64,000 nucleotides of DNA from Stylophora pistillata (lineage: Eukaryota): the NCBI RefSeq assembly GCF_002571385.2, contig NW_019217790.1:783180-847179 (forward strand), in the 5' to 3' direction. This document shows positions 1 through 13,710 of the stretch, piece after piece. The notes under the pieces were generated by a model. That model was not told the DNA's origin. It saw only the letters and a list, made by a program, of their open reading frames with translations, and did no database searches. A program made the position numbers and the translations under genes. Position 1 is the first letter of the stretch, and each line of letters begins with the position of its first letter.

Positions 1-297
1 GGGTAACTTCGGAGACCCTCGGATAGCTTTCGGTTAATCCTCGGAGTATATATTCGGAGCTCGTACACTCTTCGGAAAAATCTTGAAAAAAGAAAAAAGA
101 AGAATTGAAAAACAAGCCTTCAAAAATTCAGGGCTCTCTGGGTAACTTCGGAAACCATCGAATAATCCGTGTTAATCATCGGAGTATATTCGGAGCTCGT
201 ATATTCTTCGGAAAATAATCGGAGTCGTTTTGAATTAAAAAAACAGACGTTGAAATATTCCGGCGGAATTCCGGATTCCGGCTTTTCCAGACTAGCA
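1..297. mobile_element. End of a probable non-autonomous DNA transposon with ~139-bp subterminal direct repeats (runs off the window start)
   Basis: gggtaacttcgga...ggagtatattcggagctcgta occurs at 1-80 and again at 140-220. The block ends in attccggattccggcttttccagactagc. Confidence 0.5.
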
Positions 298-315
298 TGC
301 ATGGATGAGTCCACG

Positions 316-3300
316 TCAGCTAGGAAGCTCTTCTATATGTAGAAACTCTCGTAACAGTCGATACATGTGAAAGTCGAGCTCGGCATTCAACAAAGTTTTT
401 TTAGTTTTACGGTTATCAGTAACAAATAAAAGCGGCACTGTCAGAAGTAGGGGGCTATCTACACCAGGTGGGTAAAATTCCAGTTCATTTTTAGCAACCA
501 GATTATACACAGTGGAGTAAACAAACAAATAGTCGAAGTTGGGAATCGAAATTATGCCCACCCATAGAAATGCGAGGTGGATTCACAACATTCTAACGAC
601 TCTTTTGGTCTTAAGAGCTAACGAAAACAGGGAGAAGAGGAAAATGACGATAATTGCTCGAGTATTTTTACTTGCATTGAGTTGATGAAGACAGTTGTTA
701 AATCAACTTTCGAAACTGCATGATAGAATTTGAAGGAACTAGATGAAATGTAAAGACTTGAATCACGACTTAAAAACGTTTCAATGACTTATTGTTTTAC
801 GCATCCTTAAATCTTTTTAGATAAATCTTGTGAAGTGAAATGTTTGTAGAAACTTTATTCGTCATGTCCAATACTATTAGTTTGTTAACATGATAAACAA
901 TAACACGCTCTAGACCACCCAATTGTTAAGTTTACCAACGTAGAAGAACGATGAATGAAGCGCCGATATTTCGAATTGTCTTGCTCTTTTGGTCCATACC
1001 TAACCCTTAGTGGTAAAACTAAACTATCATTCAAAAACTTTAATGCTGAAACTTTCTGGCGAGTGCTTTTCAATCCGGGAATTTAAATAATTCTGTTGCT
1101 TTGTTAACTATGTAAACACGTGCCATATGATAATTCGCTGCCAATCACTAACCGCATTGAGATGACAGACATCACAATGTTATGACATCACAAAGCTTTA
1201 AAAATAAGAAATCTGGAACCTATTTACAGAATTATTTACCTAAGCTATTAACAGTTAAAATTATTTATCAACGTCCTAGAGTTAAAAATCAACTATTACC
1301 GAGCGCACATTTTAGAACCTCTGCCGCCCTTATTTAGGAATTGTATAGTACACTTTGATAAAATAGAAAACGTCACTATAACAAGCATGCAAAATTACGC
1401 AGGGTTTGTTCATTAGGTCACGGACGTCTGTCAGAACAAATTTTGAACAGGGATATTCATAATTAGTAAGAGCACTTGTCAAACGTGTCTTCATGACACG
1501 TTTGACATACACGTACATGATGTAGGTGAGCAAAGGAAGTAGAGACTAACAAGCGAACTGGAGCCTGAAGGCACATTTTGTCAAACCACCATTTGATCTC
1601 TACTGTTGTACCACACAACTAAAATACGTTTTTGGTAAAACGTTATTGGAAGAAAGAAAATGAAACAAACCAAAGAATGAGAGGAAACTTATGTTAAAGT
1701 TGTTCCCAGAAAGTTGGCGCAGTTTTTCCTCTTCATGTTGAAAGATATCGAACATATACTCTTTTGAAATAGGAGAAGTCTTAATAATGGGTGATTGCTT
1801 CGAGTCGTAGTCCAGGGTAAAGGTGAGCTCTTTCTCACGTCCTTTCTTGCGTCGAGGAGTTGAATAAATTTCCTATAATTACTTATCAAGATAAGGTACT
1901 CTAACATTTTCCTTTCCGTTCTTTTAACTGAAGGTCTTCTTATGTACCCTGCGAGCAGAGCCTTTTTAACCCGTCCTCGAATCGAAAAGGGAAAAAGGCT
2001 CTGCCGAGATGCTGTTGTTGCTCGTTTGAACATGCGCGGCCGTTGCCTAGAAACTGATCCTTTTCCAGGCCCCCTTGAACTATTGTGGGCGTAGATTTGG
2101 TCATCCGTGTACATGAAAAACAAAGGCGTGCTCACCAAAACCAGTTTGACTGGAGGCAAAACCGGCTTGACTAGCCCAAAGTTTTGGGCTTTCGGCATTT
2201 CAAAGCAACAACAGGATGTCGGCAGAGCCTTTTCCCTTGGAGGGTTAAAAAGAAGAAAAGGCTCTGCTCGCAGGGTACTTCTTATTTTGGTCTAAGTCAT
2301 GAACTCAAAGTTCTAGTTTGTAAGTTACATCTTTGTATACAAATTAAACTGACTTTACACCCTAGGGCTCGACCCAGGCCATGCCAGCTGTGACGACCTC
2401 TCGGTTCAACACTATCGAGCTGCTAGGTACCGAAAATGGGGACAGTTCTGCAAGTTGTTTCTAGCTGTGGATGCTGTTACAGGCCAACCCGCCGAGATAG
2501 TTCCAGTGGAGACACCAGATACACAGAAAACAGTTGGCTACGAATCGTGATGTCAAAATTGCGGCGACAGACTGGGACACCTGCGACTCTATCACGGGAC
2601 AAAAGAACCGAAGAACAAGAGCTCGGATATGATCATTTTGCTTGGAAAAACTCATCCATATCATTGGAAAGTCAAGTATTTAAAAAGCAGAATGATGAAG
2701 ATTTTAAACGCATTTCTATTTAAAACATTGTTTCTGACGCATTCTGTCCTTTTTTGTGATTTCTAAGGATTGTTGTCAGAGGGACCAGTCATTGTGTATT
2801 ATCCTGGGGGGGGGAGGGTGGAGGGGTAGAGGGTAGAGGGGAGGAATTTTGGGTTTTTCAGGGCATCAGAGGGGGGATCAGCTATCGCCAACAGAGTACG
2901 TATAATGACCGATAAATAAGACCGCTCTCTTTGGGTTCTCCTTAGCGATTTATGAAAAGCGAAGTGAGCAATACTCTAAAAATTGAATTTTTGTTTTTTT
3001 TTTAATGTCAAAATTGATAATATTGATATTTACAATGAAGGTAGAGAGGATGCTCACCTCAACAGTGTTGCACCAGAGTTTGGTTTCATTACAGAACACC
3101 CTTAATTTTTACATACGTCACTTTAATTATAAATGATTGGCTAATTATGTATACTTATTTAATACGTTAATGCTACCGATAAATGACGTTAATGCCACAT
3201 ATAAATGTAATGACATTATCTTTATGGCTACATTGGGAACTCTGCGCCGATCGAATGGAAACTTTCACGCTGAGTAGAATTCAAATTCAAATTGATGTTT

Positions 3301-6300
3301 ATATTTCCGTTATTACAGCGCAGAAAACTCAACTTAAGCCACACAACCTTTTAGCTTAAAACGAAAAAGACGAATACGAAAGAAGTACCGACTTGAACTC
3401 CAAGTTTTTTTGTTCCGAACTCGAGTTGTGATTGGTTTGAGTCACTCTATAGTTTGCACTGCAAGTTATAGTTCGTATACATGCAATTTAACCTATAAAA
3501 TCTCTTTTCATACTACCCTTGTTTTGTGGACGTTTGCCTTTTTAAATAAAACGTGTTTATCGTACACAAAGACATCATCTGAGCCTGCTGTTAATCGAAT
3601 GCGTACCACTCGATTGGAACCATGTAGCCTGGCCTGCCATATTTCACCAAACGAACTTCGCACAAGACACGTAATCAGTTGGAAGTCATGTTTCTTCCAC
3701 TGAGATGAGTTACGGCAATGACGACTTCCTACGAAGCAATTGACACGTAACAATTCAAAAAACCCAGTTTGCAGCTTGCACCTTTGGCTCCCCCTCACTT
3801 GACACACACGGATGAAAACAATCTGGGTCTAGTAATTGAAATTGAGGCTTCCCTGTAAGAGTCCTGTACACTTATCGTCACCGATATAACTAGTAAAAAT
3901 AAGTCTTGTTGAATAGACTTTTGTTCCTGCAAGAAAACCTAAATAAAACAAGACGAACTTGAAAGGAAACTTTAAAGATAATTTTCATGATATTTGTTCA
4001 TTCACCCCAACCCTCCCACCCCCCCTCATTGTTTGTCATATTCGCCTGTTCTCATTTGTACTCTACCTTCCTGCGGTCACTATCAACAGCTCTCGTCCAC
4101 CATCCCAACCTATTTCCTTTCCGGTGTCGTTGAGTGTATTCGCCAGGTCTTCCATTATCTTTATAGACGAGCTTTCATTGACAAATCGTCTTTCACTCCG
4201 GTATTTCACTAGCTAGTCTTAACCAAGACAGTTCTTGTATGTGGAGAGGAGTAGAATCATTTTTTTCACACGAGGGGAGTGGTCCCTTGAGAAAAGGATA
4301 AGCTTACCTTTATCGCAGACCCGCAGTGGATACGAATGCCTCCCTTGTCTTGCCGTTTTTCTGCGCCTTTTATTCAGAATTATCATCAGACCCAGTATTA
4401 CGATGGCAGTCAGGAATATAATTATTGTTATTGTCACAAGATGAGCCCAGATCAACCATTTTAAATTCATAATGGCCTTTTTAATATCTAAGAAACAAAA
4501 ACAAACATCATTAGTCCTTTTCTGACGAGCACGTTGCACTTCACAAAGTAAATACTTGTCTCAGGGGCAGATCTGGCTGGAATCTGATGACAATTTAGTT
4601 TACCGCTAAAATGCCCCGAAGGACTGAGTCTGCCCAGAGACTGCCGTGGATTCATAATTTTCAATTTGAAATAGTACTTTTTTTTTTTTAAAAAAGAATA
4701 ATTGAGCGGCAAAGCCAGCTACTGATCTATCTCTAAACTTCGTTTATTTCTCCGAGCAAGATTGTCAGATAAGTGCAGACTGCAGCGACTTTAACTGAAC
4801 AGAACTTTAGGAGAAAATTATCTCAAAGCAGAATATTCCACGATCTCTCTATAGGAAGTGAGCAAAAAAAATTCCCTCAACAATGTGCATAAGATCTGCA
4901 CAGAATCCTGCGATTAAAAAATATGCTGTGTTAATTTTGGAGCGTACAGTTTAAATGTCTAATGTCTAATTTTAATTTTATGTCCATGAACGTTATTGTT
5001 TGAGCCGCAAGAGTACTGTGGTTCTAAGCAAGCCCTCTTCCTCATTTCAAAGGTTTTAATCTTACCAACGGAGAGTTTTTGTAATAGAGGTCGCATTTTT
5101 AATTCGATTTTCCGTTATTAACGTTTGCCAATAACCTCTAGTCTCCAGTCTCCACTAAATTTTTTTCAAACTTCCCAACCCGTGTCTTCTTCTGATCTGC
5201 CTAATGCGTGAGATTGTCGTTTTTTAATCTTCAACTATGATCAGGGGCTGGAGAAGCAAAATAAATATATCAAAGTTTTCCTAACCGTCCATCGTATGAA
5301 TTTTGTCCTTCTCTTCTTTTAAAAACATAATGACATTACGGTTGCAGTTGTCTTCAGTGCAGCAACAGTAGTAAAGGGGTTGTAATTTACGACGGTGCTT
5401 TCTTTGTCCATTACAGGCAGATGATTGAGTGCATTCTTTACCAATCTGATATGTACATCCCTTTTTCAAGACAGTTACTCCTCCCTCTTTGTTCTGAGCC
5501 AACAACGCATAACACGCGAGAGTCGAACCAGCCCAAGTCTCATCACACTGCTGGAGCGACGAACATGTTGAGTTTTCCGACGAAGCGGAGTGGAATGTTT
5601 TACATTTGTGATCGTATGACTCACATACCAATGTCCTGCTCTCAGCTACAAAACCTGAGAAAAAAAAACTTTCGAATGTTCAAAGCTTAGACTACGTAGC
5701 TGCTTTTGATGGTCAGCAGCCTTGTCGGGCAATCCCTGGTCACGCCCAGGCAACTCCTCGAGTATTTGAACTTTTGAAGATTTGTTCCGTTAAAATCCCC
5801 TCCCCCCTCCACGGGCAAAAATTACTTTCAAATGCCCCACTCAAGCCCATTTTTTTTATCGAGTGACTCGTTGTGTGATCAATGAATGAATAGTGCACTT
5901 TACATAACAAAGTCACGTATTAGTTTTTGGTGATGCTGTTGGGTTTTTCGCCTGTAACGTCCTTCTACATTATGAAAACTTTCTTTCGAGCCATTTGCTC
6001 TCGGAAGTGGACTCTTTACCTTTAATCTCCTCTGAAATTAAAATAAAAACACGCGATCCCCCCCTTCCCCCCACTGGTTTAAATTCCCCACTCCGGGGCA
6101 CGGACGACAGTCAAATGCCCGTGAGATACCGGGGGGGGGGAAATGTTGAAGCTTCGAATTGATCGCCGCATTAGAGGTTTTTTTCTATAACACATGTCAA
6201 GTAATGTTTAGTTGCCTTTTAAGTCGTCCTACTTTTGTTAGGTTTTGATGAGGTTACGGTTTACTACAGTTTGTTTGGTTGTTCTGCATTAGATGTTTTT

Positions 6301-6691
6301 GGGGTCATGCTTTACTCCCAACAATTTTTTTTCTCCCCATGATATTAAGTAAGGTGTTTGGTGTGGTCACGCTGAGTTACATGACTCATCCGTCACCATA
6401 TGTCAGCTGTTAGGTTGGGTCACACTCTTGAAGTTAGATGTTTCTGAGGTCACGCGAGGTTGGATTTTTTTTTCTTCCGTCACGCGATGTCGAATTTTTT
6501 TCTTCAGTCACGCGACGTTAAATGTATTTCTTTCAGTCGTGTCGTGTGTCTGTTGAGTTTCAAGTCCTAGAAAAGTTATGTTATTTAATTATTGACCCCA
6601 ACATGAAAAACATGTACATTTGAGCGCAGATCGTGATGTGATGATTCTACTTACAGAAAATACAGATCCACCACAACCAGCTAGGACTCAT
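316..6691 (-). CDS. Activin/BMP type II receptor-like protein with truncated, degenerate kinase (~317 aa; decoy receptor or decaying pseudogene)
   Basis: Phase-consistent GT-AG exons: 6655-6691 (MSPSWLWWICIF, signal peptide); 5286-5654 (three-finger ectodomain, KKGC...YYCCCTEDNCN); 4308-4487 (TM followed by NKRRRK); 3517-3728 (FQLITCLVRSSFGEIWQARLHG, like kinase subdomains I-II; could instead end at TGA 3508-3510); 1839-1872 (EIYSTPRRK); 316-437 (LLFV...DFHMYRLLREFLH, then TGA). Exons 1-4 are strong; the last two are less certain. Confidence 0.8.
1945..2277. mobile_element. MITE with TIR taccctgcgagcagagcctttt
   Basis: The TIR at 1945 has its reverse complement ending at 2277, with an extended imperfect inverted repeat (ggctctgccga..ctgttgttgc). 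Confidence 0.8.
2436..2723 (+). CDS. Hypothetical 95-aa protein with possible N-myristoylation/palmitoylation signal, antisense within a putative receptor-gene intron
   Basis: Good start context (aaaATGG). N-terminus MGTVLQVVSSCGCC. No recognisable domain. Confidence 0.3.
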   Translation: MGTVLQVVSSCGCCYRPTRRDSSSGDTRYTENSWLRIVMSKLRRQTGTPATLSRDKRTEEQELGYDHFAWKNSSISLESQVFKKQNDEDFKRISI

Positions 6692-9600
6692 TATGTTTCA
6701 CTGTGATGATAGAACTGCCAACTTCTAATGAAATGGAGATAGGACATTTATTAACAAAACTGTATTGCAGAGATAAAAGGAAAACAAAAAAATCTTATGG
6801 AGAAAAGTTGCGGGTCGCAATAGTCATGAATAAATAAAAACCTCTTCAAAGGGTAACGCGTCGTAAAGTCGACCGCGGGTCTGAAGAACAAATACGATCA
6901 CAGCCCCGACTCGTTAGCGGAGTACAATTGAGGTCAATTACAGCATTTAGAATCATCATCTAATTTTTCTATGTGTGTTTGAATCTAAACTAACGCTGAA
7001 TTTGGCCAGTTTACAAACTGGCTCTAATGATATTACAAAACGGGGCTCTAAGTCTCTCGAATATTTTAAGAATAGCAGGTCCCGTTCATAAGAGCTTCAG
7101 TGAAGAATTGAGAAATACGTGCTCTCAATTCAGGATAAACTCCAACATCAGCCTCAATGAGATTAAAATGAAAGCTTTGACAGAAAAACCATTTCGTGGT
7201 GAAATGGCAGTGACTTAATTTCGATTTCCTCGCTCTAAACTTGAATTTTTCTTTCATATTAATCAGTACGCCTGTCGGCTTAATGCGATTTAAAGAATTA
7301 TGTATGTGCAACAGACATGCAAAATTCAGATAATAAAATCATAAAATCAAGAACAATTTTTTCAACTTACTGGATAGAAATTGGTAGTCCGAAGCGCTAA
7401 TTTGTCGGACGCGACGTGAATAAAAGAATATATTTATTTAAGCGTCCGCTGCCTTTTTTTTTTATGTCTAGTCCAGTCTAATTGCAGAAAAAGTACTGTC
7501 AATCAACGTAAGTTGAAAGCCAATCAAAGGATAGAACAGTACTGAACTGGAACAATGGAACACTTCTTTCGAGTTTTAAGATTGCAAGGGAGATAACCTA
7601 AAATTAATATAATTTGCCATTGACTGAAATAAATGTTTAACATAACAAAAAAAAACTCCACTTACTAAGTTCAGTTTTTTTTTTTCCAACTAAAAATTTG
7701 CATAGTTTTCACTTAATCATATGACAGGATAAAAAAAAGAAAAAATTGATGCAAGAAAAAAGTGGGACTAGTCATCGAAGCGAAACCTAAAAAAACAGAG
7801 CAGAGTCGTGATTCAGAGTTCTTTAAAGATCTTCCAGACGAAAGGTGGTAACTTAAATTTGAGAGATGATAAAGTAAACACGGGAACAGGTAAACAAAGA
7901 ACTGTATAAGATTGCGCAGGTGGCTAGGAGAACACCAATTACCTAACTAGAAAAACACATGCAATCATTCGTTCACAAATTAATTTACGATGTGAGCTGT
8001 TTTTTCTTTTCTTTTTTTGCATTGTCAGGAAAGTCCTTTACTAAGGCATTCACGAAGATAATTAAGGTACGTTGGAATTCAAAAACTAGGTTTTCACAGT
8101 TATCATATCAGTGACTGCAGCTGAGTTACTTGATATTGAAATTAAAATACAAAATTAATTAATAAATGGTTACTTTGTGTGAGACAAATTTTTCTTTTGG
8201 TAAATTAAAATACTGGTTTCATTCAATTGATTTAAACACATTTCCATAATAGTACATTACAACCCCGACCGAGTAAAATTCTAAAATTTTTCAAGCACTT
8301 TCAGTTTAACGGTTAAGCTTTTATTTCACTTAACACTTGGCACGGGACTTTGCCACTATAAAGTTGTGTCAATACTTCTTTGTTTTGAGCCTTTGATGAG
8401 CCGAACACTTTGTAATTCCTCTTTCTTACTATAATTGTGTCGGAAGGTAACATTCTGAAAACATTAATCTGGCGTTGGACGCTTTCTCTTAGCTTAGAAT
8501 TTAGTATGTGCCAGGCGATGAAAAATAGCAGGAGCATCGGGAGAAAGAAAATTTAATCACCGCCCTGTGTCAATAGCGCACTATTTCGCTCGCATTGAGT
8601 CGACGTTTGTCGCGTGAGATCATAATAAAAAAGAAAAATCGAATTACACAGTTTTTAAGGCGGTGTTTCAGCGGTGTTAGTATTTCGGCCAATGTACTCA
8701 GTCACTCCCAATGGTTGCTTTGTTTCCGAACAGACAAGTGATTTAGACTCCGCACGGATTCTGACCTGACCGATTAATCTAACCCTGGTAATTTGGTAAC
8801 TTCTTGTATCCAGTACTTTTGCGATTTGATTGAAAAAGAGGTCTGGGTTTGACCACTGTCGAAACTTGAACAACACGACAATCTATTAGAGGTCCATGAA
8901 AATGTTTTAGGAAAGCACCGTCTTGATTCATTTCCACAAATATATTTGCGTCAAATGAATACTGAAAAATTATGTTTCTGCCTCCAAGTGCTAAAGCTTT
9001 GACGTGGTTTACCCATATGCTGTAATCCCTCTATCCGTAGAATAAGCCTAATATTTTTCCCTCAAAAACTACAGCGTGAATATACATAGCTCTACTTTTT
9101 CATTGACTCTAGAAACTATCCAAACGAAACATTTCTTTGGAGATTCAAAGTCTTCCAGATATTCTCGAACAGAATAGTGCTTACTATCTCTTGTCACTTT
9201 TAACCCACCCCTCCCTTCTCTAAAATTCTTTTACGCTTCCTTTGCGAAACCAAGGGGTACAATTGACAACCAAACTTTCAGTTGTGCCAGACTTACCAAG
9301 AATAAAATCATCCCTCCATTTTTTCCTTAGTTTCGGACTGGAAGTCGCAAATAATTATAAAGACAATGAAATTAATTCGTTCGTCCAGACCTCATTTTGT
9401 GAACACTTAAATCGACTCTAAAAAATCAATCGTCAATGACTTTTTTATTTACACCCGCAGCTCGTATCGTCTTGCAATGTATTATTAAAGATAGTTGAGC
9501 TTCCTTGAACAATCTTTTAAGTAGCACGTGAATATTCAGACATAGGTGAACTTTTTTACCTTATGAACAAGACGGAACTACCTTTTGAAAAAGTGACAAA

Positions 9601-10398: not shown

Positions 10399-13112
10399 TC
10401 GCGAGAAGTCAAAACAAGTCGAAATGGAACAGATGTATACATATCATTTAATTTTATGCATGCATAATGGTAACTAATGTATGTCTTACATCAAGCCTTT
10501 TCGCTCACCTGTACTTCTGCGTACTGCGTACAAGAAAAGAAGACTTTTCAGGTGGTGAAAAAGCAAAATCATAAAAAATCGTGGGATAAGATTGAAAACA
10601 GAAACGGCATGCTAAGCCGTATTTCTCTTTTCAAAAGTAGTTTCGTAATTGATTTTAGTTTGTTGTGTAGTTTTACCTCCAGGGGTTTGTAATTTCAATA
10701 AAAAGAATGTCTTTCAGGACTGAAAACATCGAACATTTTGTGAATCTAGTGATTTCCTGTGTAAGCGTGCAGTACTAGCAATTTTCAGACTCCCTGAGAT
10801 TGATATACCTTACCACAATTCTCACATGATTTTATCCTACAGAAGGAAATAAAGTGAACGAATTTTAATCTGTAAAGTATCATCGCCGTAATGCCTCCAG
10901 GTAATTTTTGGAAACTATTTCTTCCTTTTTTTGAGAGTTTCATCCAGGAATTGTGGCGAAATCGTCCCCGCAAGAGTGCAGAGGTATTCTGGAAAAAATA
11001 ACTTTCGTTATATCTAGATTTGGCCGAGTAACGAAGCAAGCAAAGAAAATAAATAAAAGTCCTTGTTCATTTCTTTTTCAGGTTAGCGTTCTCTCAGCCT
11101 GACCATGAAAGAGAAATTTTTTTTATCGAGAACTGAAAGCATAGTTACCGCAGGCCGCGGTGCATAATATACTGCGCGATCTTTCTTTGCAGAGAAAACA
11201 GTAAACATTTTTTATCATTTCTTATTCCCTAAACACATTCATTCAATTTCCAGTTTTGAGTTTTAAATCGTACATACCATGTTTACGAGTTGGCGGAAAG
11301 CGAAAGGCTCAGTGGCAGACATTCACCTGAAAGAATTAAAATTGCTAATTTCGCCTCAGGTGTTTGTCACCAATTTTAACCACTTAACTACTGACACAAA
11401 GGTCATTTATTTTCACGACCAACTTCTGAGCAATGTTTTTCCCCTTCCCCTCAAAAAAAAATATCTTTTGAATTACTTTGAGGAAATATGGAGAATATCG
11501 TTCATATGGCTTAACCCACTGCATTGCGCCTTCGTAAACTTAATGGCGCGCAGGTGTTTCGATTAAAAAGAAAGAAAGACTAGAATCGAGAATCGAACCT
11601 GGACGTCTCTTTTCTCGGAATCTCTCTTCTCTACAGATAGAATACCACACTGGTCTGACAGAATTTCAAAGAATTAAAATGCATATTTCAATTACCTGAC
11701 ACGTATACAGTAGTAGGTCTGACACGTATTTGGTAAGTAACCCCTTCCTGAAATGTTAACGAGGCGGTAGCTTTAGCCTAAATTCTACTCAGTCTGAGTC
11801 CACGATTATTATTTTTTTTTGCCCTATTTCATCGTAACCCAGAACACATTTTTCTTCTACCTTCATTATTAGCTGAGTTACTATCGTTGATGGCTACTGT
11901 TTGGCCTCGTTCTGAAGTACACCGTTGGTTTTTTTGCCAGGTTTTTATCGAACCATGTGCTCTCTTTGATTATAATTTTTGATATCAGACTATAATGGTT
12001 TCTGTCCAAAAAACATGCCATGTAACAGCACAAACGCCATATTTCACAACAATATCAAAGCTTTTTCTAACAGTTATGACTACCAAACAAACATTTTCTG
12101 AGCCGTCCTCAACACATTCAACTGAGGCAATGAGCACGCAGCGCCCCTCAAGTGTTGTTTTTAGAGAGCTTCCTTTGTTTCCATTTTCAGGCTCTTCTAT
12201 CGTCGTAATATCTTTTGACGGAAAAAAAGTCTCAACCTGCTTACAAAAGAACCGAACAAAGTAGAAAAATGCCCCAATTAAAGGACTTCAACGGGAAACC
12301 AGACACTATTTTCTTCCTTTTCGTGCAACTCCATTTTTTTTTTCATCCATTCATCTGAGCAACACTTAGCTCAACTTCAGTCACCAATCAATTTAAAACT
12401 GAAATATAAGCCGAGAATTCCACTGGTTTCTTTCCTTTCTCTTAAGCCTTACAGTGCAAACGTGCAAGACAAGAACACTGAGAACCACTTCGTTGCGGTG
12501 GTTTGTACTTTTAATATAAGTTAATTGGCAGTTTGGTTCACGCGGTAACCTGTAGCGACAAATCCTTTCACACAAAGTAGTCTAATTTCCCACCGACCAT
12601 CATTGTAAAAAAAAAAAAACAAAAAACAGAATACCCGAATTTTGAATTGAATGAATCCATGGTAAAAGAGCGTGAACGTTATACGTTATACGTTATACAT
12701 TGCCCTTATGGTTCAAGGTAACCTACACGAACAAATTCAGAAAGGTATTTTTCGTCTTGTCACGAGCGTGGGAAAGGTCTCCATGAGGAATCAAACCTCA
12801 GATCTTCGGATTCTGCACTCCGATGCTTTCTCAAAGTAGTTTTATCTTAGCTTTTAACTGGTGTTTTCCAGCGACCAACATGGTAAAAGACACAGGTAAA
12901 AGTGCGTAAACCATTGTGAACGTTCCACATATAAAAAGAAACGCGACAAATTAACGCTAGGTGGAACACGGGAGACAAATAACTATAGAAATAATGGAAA
13001 GCCTGACAAATCATCGAACTGAAATGAAACTGCCCTCGCATAATACACACGTTGCCGGCTAACAAGTGTTTGTGAGATTTACTAAGTGCAGTTTGTAAGC
13101 CTTTACCTGTTA

Positions 13113-13415
13113 GAGGGGGGCTTTGGGATTTTCGTTTTTGCGGTTTTGACTGTTTTTTGGATCGGTTTTTCGGTTTTTGGGCCAAAAAGGTTCGGCTTTT
13201 CGGTTTTGATGTTCAGAGCAGTTTGCGGATTTTAAGTGTTTTTGCATTCGGTTTTCAGTTTTTACGAAAACTCTGATGCGGTTTTCGGTTTCTCATTTTT
13301 GACCCCTTTAAAGGTGAAAATGTAGCGGTTTTCGGTTTTGCTGCCTGTTTTCGTCGGTTTTGGAGGTTTTTTTTTTCCGGTTTTTCGGTTTTCCAGAGGC
13401 CCCAATGCCCCCCTC
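13113..13415. mobile_element. MITE with internal cggtttt repeats
   Basis: TIR gagggggg(c)tttggg / cccaatgccccccctc, with ctgtt on both flanks. Confidence 0.7.
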
Positions 13416-13568
13416 CTGTTCTACACCTTTCAAATTTGCAAAAAGATTCCTTCCAAAAATAGAGATTATTAAGTCTACATCTTCTTTACTTTAAATGTCC
13501 TGAAACATCGGCCATTTTGTGCAACCTGATTGCAACGTTTGAAATTTCCTTTGCTGCAGCATAAAAGA

Positions 13569-13710
13569 AATTTGGTTTTATCAACTGAGTTTATAATGCA
13601 AGTTGGCCACCGCGTGTAAAGACGGAGTTTCAAACCTGACGTTTCGAGCGTTAGCTCTTCGTCAGAGCGAAGTGCAGCACCGCATTTTCTTTAGAAACTT
13701 AAAATGTTTA
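13569..13710 (-). mobile_element. Short Penelope-derived element fragment with minimal hammerhead ribozyme
   Basis: The minus strand reads ctCTGACGAagagctaacgctcGAAAcgtc. Same family as 42624-42877 and 58806-58962. Confidence 0.75.

Follow-up and report, generated by a model that had tools for sequence, protein, structure and literature searches.

The DNA analysed here, referred to below as the window, is a stretch of 64,000 nucleotides from Stylophora pistillata (RefSeq assembly GCF_002571385.2, contig NW_019217790.1, forward-strand positions 783,180 to 847,179). It is eukaryotic DNA of about 38% G+C with 182 N in all, and near its start it carries, on the minus strand, the gene LOC111331341, which RefSeq lists as an "uncharacterized protein" of 268 residues. 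We argue below that the product is a type I membrane protein with an ectodomain of the activin type II receptor (ActRII) kind and a cytoplasmic tail that retains only the first strands of a receptor kinase, and that it may act as a pseudoreceptor in TGF-beta-type signalling. The coding parts of its four exons are the following.

6655..6691, minus strand: coding part of exon 1, with the ATG at 6691-6689 and then 12 codons and 1 base of the signal peptide MSPSWLWWICIF
5286..5654, minus strand: exon 2, encoding the end of the signal peptide and the 12-Cys three-finger ectodomain of ActRII kind, with KKGCT and the CCC...CN knot
4308..4487, minus strand: exon 3, encoding a stalk, the transmembrane (TM) helix LIWAHLVTITIIIFLTAIVILGLMIIL, the basic stop-transfer sequence NKRRRK and a juxtamembrane stretch
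3508..3728, minus strand: coding part of exon 4, with codons 3728-3511 and the stop TGA at 3508-3510, encoding the 72-residue cytoplasmic tail that holds FQLITCLVRSSFGEIWQARL

Reads and contigs of four RNA runs were mapped on positions 801-6800 (joint positions are given after the stated cut shifts), and the three joints of this model, 6655 to 5654, 5286 to 4487 and 4308 to 3728, are all present in a single poly-A RNA contig of 1632 nt (X4) with CT..AC ends, that is GT..AG on the minus strand. The joint 5286 to 4487 is furthermore found in 2 stranded raw reads (X24), and the orientation of these reads over exons 2-3 is as expected of minus-strand RNA. All three introns are canonical GT-AG introns of phase 1, with the donors GTAAGT (exon 1), GTTAGG and GTAAGC (exon 3) and with a pyrimidine-rich AG acceptor in each case, and about a quarter of sampled words of 3300-6750 is present in each listed RNA-seq run, these runs stemming from several studies, which is approximately the exonic share. 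Frame arithmetic over the four exons yields 268 codons in an intact open reading frame (ORF), and the model agrees residue for residue with the RefSeq protein (P0043); in the searches described below the exons of the window were used singly, while whole-protein work was carried out on the database proteins P0043, P0039 and P0003. The 5' untranslated region (UTR) reaches at least 6800, RNA contigs covering 6635-6800, and the 3' UTR goes on below 3508, where contig X4 continues out of exon 4 without splicing, past the stop and a supposed donor near 3514, down to at least 2862; a search for the 3' end found no canonical poly-A signal on the minus strand between 1869 and 3508. It should also be mentioned that X4 carries 83 extra letters at 3239/3240 and several small indels in 2900-3100, probably reflecting an allelic insertion in the UTR region. 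The signal peptide, the 12-Cys three-finger ectodomain, the TM helix with its stop-transfer sequence and the clean splice phases, all of which had been read in a first-pass annotation of this DNA, are hence confirmed by the RNA joints and the phase-1 GT-AG introns.

By sequence profile and predicted fold the ectodomain is an ActRII-type three-finger domain. A profile made from 15 ectodomains of the family to which the protein belongs (A4) was compared with all PDB sequences and gave ActRIIB as the best match (E 3e-9), with ActRIIA at E 5e-8, BMPRII at 5e-5, AMHR2 at 1e-3, TGFBR2 at 0.01 and CD59 at 0.66, and with no type I receptor matching across the PDB at E<=1. Ten of the 12 ectodomain Cys align with the ActRII framework including the CCC...CN knot, and the additional Cys pair lies near the N-terminus. 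Indeed, the fold, the 10-Cys framework, the knot and the CYA and KKGC motifs are shared with ACVR2A/B and with the coral's own ActRII (C23), from which the protein nonetheless differs in having two extra Cys, in the replacement of the central Trp and in the kinase being cut after beta3/alphaC. The Pfam Activin_recp model (PF01064) scores exon 2 at 15.8 bits and thus below its gathering cut-off of 20.9, as it does the orthologues P0002, P0003 and P0008, whereas P0004 (26.2 bits) and P0007 (23.7 bits) score above it. An AlphaFold2 (AF2) model of the window ectodomain, whose input alignment contained ActRII-like sequences, has a predicted local distance difference test score (pLDDT) of 75.1 and a predicted template modelling score (pTM) of 0.67, and when it was used for searching with Foldseek the 16 top matches were ActRIIB/IIA ectodomains with target template modelling scores of 0.71-0.77, followed by BMPRII, TGFBR2 and AMHR2.

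The tail is clearly, as far as its sequence allows it to be judged, a remnant of strands beta1-beta3 of a TGF-beta-receptor-family kinase. It comprises 72-73 residues with a mean column identity of 83% in seven species, and the protein ends at approximately the expected start of beta4. When the tail profile was searched against the PDB, 59 of the 60 best matches were kinases, aligned at the very N-terminal start of the domain (beta1-beta3), the best of them being ACVR1 (E 0.023), and in a six-frame search of the 398-Mb genome the best non-self match was to beta1-beta3 of a BMPR1-like type I receptor with a GS box on contig C11 (E 0.022). When the tails were compared by hhalign, profile against profile, with the N-lobes of the five receptors of the coral, the probability was 93.8% and P 1.7e-7 over 39 columns, and receptor Ser/Thr kinases make up the clusters that lie nearest in the ESM Atlas, although with weak scores (0.80; template modelling score 0.43) that serve as a lead only. 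The exon 4 frame also weakly matches C168 (E 0.015) in its intron/juxtamembrane part, with no DNA repeat behind the match. Designed beta-propellers of the Pizza6 type were considered as relatives of exon 4 on account of a PDB match at E 2.7e-11 and were rejected, since a single one of their six identical repeats contributes no more than about 7.5 bits, with a domain E of about 50, and the apparent significance is hence an artefact of summing over repeats; Pizza6 proteins are furthermore not among the 60 best PDB matches of the tail family profile.

Whatever its origin, the tail is devoid of usable ATP-binding motifs and of any catalytic lobe. The Gly-loop is degenerate (VRSSFG here), only its last Gly remaining, and the beta3 Lys is Arg (VVRIRL) in all seven species compared, both of which features had been recognised previously and proved unchanged in seven species. 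Complete kinase motifs (GxGxxG, the beta3 Lys, HRD and DFG) are not present in the LOC111331341 protein, which has no Pkinase match, and when the coral's five receptor kinases were used in tBLASTn searches, only exon 4 was matched in 1-3900, and neither 1-3510 nor the 10 kb below the window nor the sequence beyond the orthologues' stops yielded a kinase relic. The notion that translation stops before HRD and DFG accordingly holds, there being neither in the mRNA nor downstream, but the stop is the TGA at 3508-3510 and not, as had been supposed, one at 316-318.

As to which receptor class the stub derives from, the tail bit score is highest against the coral BMPR1-like type I receptor (22.9 bits) and amounts to 2.4-2.6 bits against the two type II receptors of the coral itself (2.4 for ActRII), to 10.9 against the ActRII of another organism and to 6.5 against a second type I receptor, and it should be borne in mind that the scores of some type I receptors are no higher than those of type II. 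The BMPR1 (ALK3/6)-kind receptor on C11 aligns with the tail in register over beta1-beta3 and has the motif GEVWQAR in common with one orthologue, but its ectodomain is of type I and its kinase is complete, GS box, HRD and DFG included, whereas the coral family has no clear GS box and a type II ectodomain. The first-pass annotation had aligned the cytoplasmic exons in register with the ActRII kinase N-lobe, and FQLITCLVRSSFGEIWQARL, which lies in a real exon, does align to beta1-beta2 of TGF-beta-receptor kinases; the specific reference to ActRII was however too narrow, since the stub scores higher with type I receptors (22.9 bits; ACVR1) than with coral ActRII. The description as a kinase-amputated type II receptor is on the whole appropriate as regards the ActRII-type ectodomain, the N-lobe remnant and the missing catalytic lobe, and a chimeric origin is possible. 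In coral ActRII a single exon extends from the TM helix to DFG, while in the pseudoreceptor gene the TM exon and the stub are separated by an intron, which is therefore not common to both. It was also considered that the stop might stem from reading through a splice donor (AGG/GTAGTATGA) of the ancestral gene, but this is unsupported, since neither coral ActRII nor the BMPR1-like gene has an intron there. A sequence CDK(G/S)VSGT is found in P0039, P0040 and P0041 12 residues before beta1, a spacing equal to that from SGSGSG to beta1 in type I receptors; it may be a faint GS-box trace or pure chance, and its VSG is missing in Stylophora and Oculina.

Comparison of coding sequences indicates that LOC111331341 is a functional gene under purifying selection, and that this selection is strongest on the tail. 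Full-length relatives of 254-269 residues are LOC110065489 of Orbicella faveolata, which is likewise named 'uncharacterized protein', a hypothetical protein of Oculina patagonica and five proteins from RNA-run contigs of other species, four of which have an uninterrupted ORF equal to the full spliced mRNA form, whereas the fifth (P0055) is called from a later Met. The Orbicella and Oculina loci have the same exon structure as that of Stylophora, nearly all orthologues stop within one residue of the same place (...RVV, stop), and this truncation point is conserved across stony corals. Two more divergent loci retain 54-77% identity in the tail exon and 31-44% in the ectodomain, and when the ectodomain exon was searched against 1.8 billion representative proteins, nine matches fell below 1e-10, all of them short. 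Ratios of nonsynonymous to synonymous substitution (dN/dS), calculated according to Nei-Gojobori for pairs with unsaturated dS (0.22-0.78), are about 0.08 for the tail, 0.25-0.53 for the ectodomain and 0.22-0.57 for the TM exon, and both the ectodomain and the kinase part are hence under purifying selection; towards the closest relative the values are 0.18 for the ectodomain, 0.35 for the TM exon and 0.25 for the tail, albeit from small counts. In the Orbicella faveolata sequence MZGG01000310.1 (L031) the exon 4 segment occurs three times (12485-14640, 17563-19718 and 20960-22802) at 99.8-99.9% identity and adjoins a 2.9-kb run of N, most likely as an assembly artefact and not as a real triplication, and this accounts for the odd split gene call there.

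These data bear directly on the proposal that the locus is a pseudogene in asymmetric decay, or that the gene is longer and continues over two more exons to a TGA at 316-318. The proposal stems from a likeness, seen by eye, of two reading-frame pieces, EIYSTP (about 1840-1872) and LPLLFV...FHMYRLLREFL (319-460), to ActRII motifs, the latter in the form FH...L..FL. However, none of the four RNA runs shows a joint to about 1872 or one leading from about 1840 to about 460, the pieces have no counterpart in the Orbicella and Oculina loci other than noise at E>5, and their frames have neither a paralogue across the genome nor a PDB kinase match at E<=10, even though the PDB is known to contain human type II receptor kinase domains. 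Furthermore, the part of the kinase that EIYSTP should stand for, following beta3, is already accounted for within exon 4, and both pieces fall within a plus-strand gene for a G-protein-coupled receptor (GPCR), in an intron and an exon, respectively. The two last exons are thus a chance resemblance, and the repeat that had been said to begin beyond 316 is a real repeat family at 1-298 (at least 8 copies of 93-95% identity) but has no bearing on LOC111331341. Decay is in turn rejected on the grounds that the ORF is intact and expressed, with four-exon splicing in RNA from several studies, that dN/dS is well below 1 in all parts and lowest in the kinase stub, and it may be added that the stop position is shared by 8 species. 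Taken as a whole, the proposal is very improbable indeed.

A gene with these properties calls for comparison with known inhibitory receptors. ActRII and TbetaRII have a dominant-negative effect when their kinase is deleted, in that they form dead complexes, and such engineered receptors (kinase-deleted ActRII, dnTbetaRII and GPI-ecto-TbetaRII) resemble the coral protein in combining a type II ectodomain and a membrane anchor with the lack of a kinase. They are however laboratory constructs with a wild-type ligand-binding surface and no conserved tail, whereas the coral protein comes from a gene that occurs in nature and is under selection, its binding surface being altered and its tail highly constrained. 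Even closer in architecture is BAMBI, with which the coral protein has in common a length of about 260 residues, a signal peptide, a three-finger ectodomain like that of TGF-beta receptors, a single TM helix and a short, conserved cytoplasmic tail lacking kinase activity. BAMBI acts as a pseudoreceptor, which the coral family is only proposed to do, and its ectodomain is type I-like as opposed to the type II (ActRII)-like ectodomain found here; the coral tail is moreover a recognisable beta1-beta3 kinase remnant, unlike that of BAMBI. The Pfam model for BAMBI (PF06211) matches none of six family members at E<=10 and the Stylophora pistillata genome yielded no canonical BAMBI domain, which together with the type II ectodomain makes the protein an analogue and not an orthologue of BAMBI. 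In the literature, BAMBI figures as a type I receptor that is itself non-functional and prevents receptor complexes from assembling (PMC11226491, PMC9964332), a 2024 review citing it only as a general type I pseudoreceptor (PMC11226491), and a type II ectodomain anchored by glycosylphosphatidylinositol (GPI), namely GPI-ecto-TbetaRII, has been used as a blocker of signalling (PMC10565558). For cnidarian BMP signalling two type II receptors, actRII and bmprII, are listed and a truncated one goes unmentioned (PMC11846459), and our literature search on the locus name and on truncated or decoy receptors in corals found no description of either.

On these analogies we consider the LOC111331341 protein to be a BAMBI-like but type II-derived membrane pseudoreceptor that may damp or reshape TGF-beta/BMP/activin signalling, a reading to which we would assign a probability of roughly 55%, and modulation of TGF-beta/BMP signalling is probably what the protein does. 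It would enter ligand or receptor complexes by way of its type II-like ectodomain or its conserved tail and, once there, would be unable to phosphorylate the type I receptor, and such non-productive complexes would damp or reshape the signal as BAMBI and type II receptors lacking their kinase do. That the tail is so strongly constrained makes it likely that this part binds a partner inside the cell and suggests a module for interaction as opposed to a merely passive anchor.

Several observations nonetheless weigh against this pseudoreceptor reading. Y60, W78 and F101 of ActRIIB form a hydrophobic ligand-contact triad, the Trp lying at the heart of the contact in both ActRII and BMPRII, and this triad is incomplete in the family: the Tyr of CYA, at the Tyr60 position, is kept here and mostly kept among the relatives, and the residue preceding CCC, which in ActRIIB is Phe101, varies between Tyr, His and Phe among family members, but the Trp that follows KKGC in ActRII is Thr here, as noted in the first-pass annotation and confirmed by alignment to ActRIIB, and is Ile, Met, Ala or Val in the relatives and never Trp. 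Given the central role of this Trp the binding surface of the ectodomain has changed, and since the residue is never present in the family, canonical high-affinity ligand binding is doubtful. A plain ligand trap is furthermore in poor agreement with the loss of the Trp combined with an ectodomain that evolves faster than the tail, and any decoy function is putative, being proposed by analogy. The kinase homology of the tail spans about 40 residues, with each database-wide E-value around 0.02, and the stub may be of type I or type II origin, the scores favouring type I but about 40 columns being too few for a decision. In addition, a whole-protein AF2 model of the Orbicella orthologue is poor (mean pLDDT 47), and a predicted complex of residues 20-135 of P0043 with a coral BMP5-8 mature-domain dimer reached a complex score of 0.28 (mark 0.34), which should be read as evidence neither way.

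Some of these points may equally be taken to mean that the protein is a three-finger membrane protein outside the TGF-beta pathway, whose ectodomain would bind another partner in the manner of Ly6/CD59 proteins and whose tail would signal or anchor through an unrelated partner. Besides the Trp being gone in all members and the BMP5-8 prediction giving no support, inconclusive though the latter is, this notion can draw on the ectodomain evolving three to six times faster than the tail and on the single ectodomain sequence being also weakly CD59-like. It is, however, difficult to reconcile with a profile far closer to ActRIIA/B (3e-9) than to CD59 (0.66), with the retention in most members of Tyr60 and of an aromatic residue at the Phe101 position, and with a tail that is a receptor-kinase remnant and as such fits a continued life in receptor complexes, and we therefore regard it as conceivable but unlikely.

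If the protein does belong to the pathway, its effect need not be inhibitory, and a positive co-receptor that takes up ligand or a type I receptor at the membrane and passes it to a signalling-competent type II receptor, thereby raising sensitivity, would be supported by the same evidence of architecture as the pseudoreceptor. At least 24 TGF_beta ligand-domain loci exist in the genome, including a tandem group of four divergent ones at 420-451 kb of C70, which is a large set for a cnidarian; accessory receptors with new specificities are plausible on this basis, and the set is also a possible context for an extra pseudoreceptor. Nothing in the data favours enhancement, though, and to our knowledge every kinase-deleted type II receptor tested inhibits, so that a co-receptor appears quite improbable. 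Only slightly better odds can be given to a further-reaching version of the inhibitory reading, according to which the protein would be a membrane inhibitor of the corals' own making that arose by type II truncation. Its stub, closer in looks to a type I than to a type II N-lobe, would be the working part, a mimic docking inside the cell onto partner receptor kinases or their regulators, so that complexes would be poisoned on both sides of the membrane, and the protein would constitute a lineage-specific BMP/TGF-beta control point in skeleton formation and symbiont tolerance.

Returning to the pseudoreceptor as such, the TGF-beta pathway has few pseudoreceptors of natural origin, and the one known from textbooks, BAMBI, derives from a type I receptor. 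If our reading is true, the corals possess a type II-derived counterpart of BAMBI that is conserved and expressed in reef builders and is carried in the databases merely as an "uncharacterized protein". BMP and activin pathways have been implicated in coral calcification, axis patterning and symbiont tolerance, and LOC111331341 would offer a testable handle on how corals tune BMP/activin signalling. A structural question is likewise raised, namely what a 40-residue kinase beta-sheet stub with a dN/dS of about 0.08 binds to.

It should be mentioned that a second candidate of this general type may exist elsewhere in the genome, since the minus strand of C135:284000-293999 (L045) encodes a full-length, type I-looking receptor with a weak GS box (CSGSGV) and a single exon from the TM helix to the kinase, in which HRD is replaced by HCD and DFG/DLG by GLG, and which may thus be a full-length pseudokinase receptor.

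The plus-strand GPCR gene referred to above converges on LOC111331341. In an RNA contig its exon ending at 467 (CAG/GTGGGT) is joined to an exon starting at 2366, which extends as far as about 3570, or 3931 in some of the contigs. Exon 4 of the pseudoreceptor gene is therefore overlapped in antisense by the 3' UTR of the GPCR gene, and the orientation of stranded reads at 2401-3600 is opposite to that of the reads over exons 2-3. The plus-strand frame 2457-2720 matches the C-terminal tail of a seven-transmembrane (7TM) GPCR adjoining the Oculina orthologue (42% over 90 residues, E 4e-14), so that a convergent 7TM receptor gene lies beside the orthologue in Oculina, and the same arrangement is found in one further relative. 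The 7TM core of the plus-strand gene was not found within the 10 kb below the window.

Two further repeats lie in this part of the window. An element of about 340 bp at 1942-2286 has inverted ends (arms at about 1944-2022 and 2204-2278) and looks like a miniature inverted-repeat transposable element; at least 40 copies of 89-95% identity exist in the genome, the element is present in RNA contigs, and shorter, internally deleted forms of it appear as 'joints' such as 1969>2235. A repeat at 1192-1313, finally, has copies on contig C1398 and combines high RNA depth with loose ends on both sides, from which it follows that its RNA is expressed from elsewhere.

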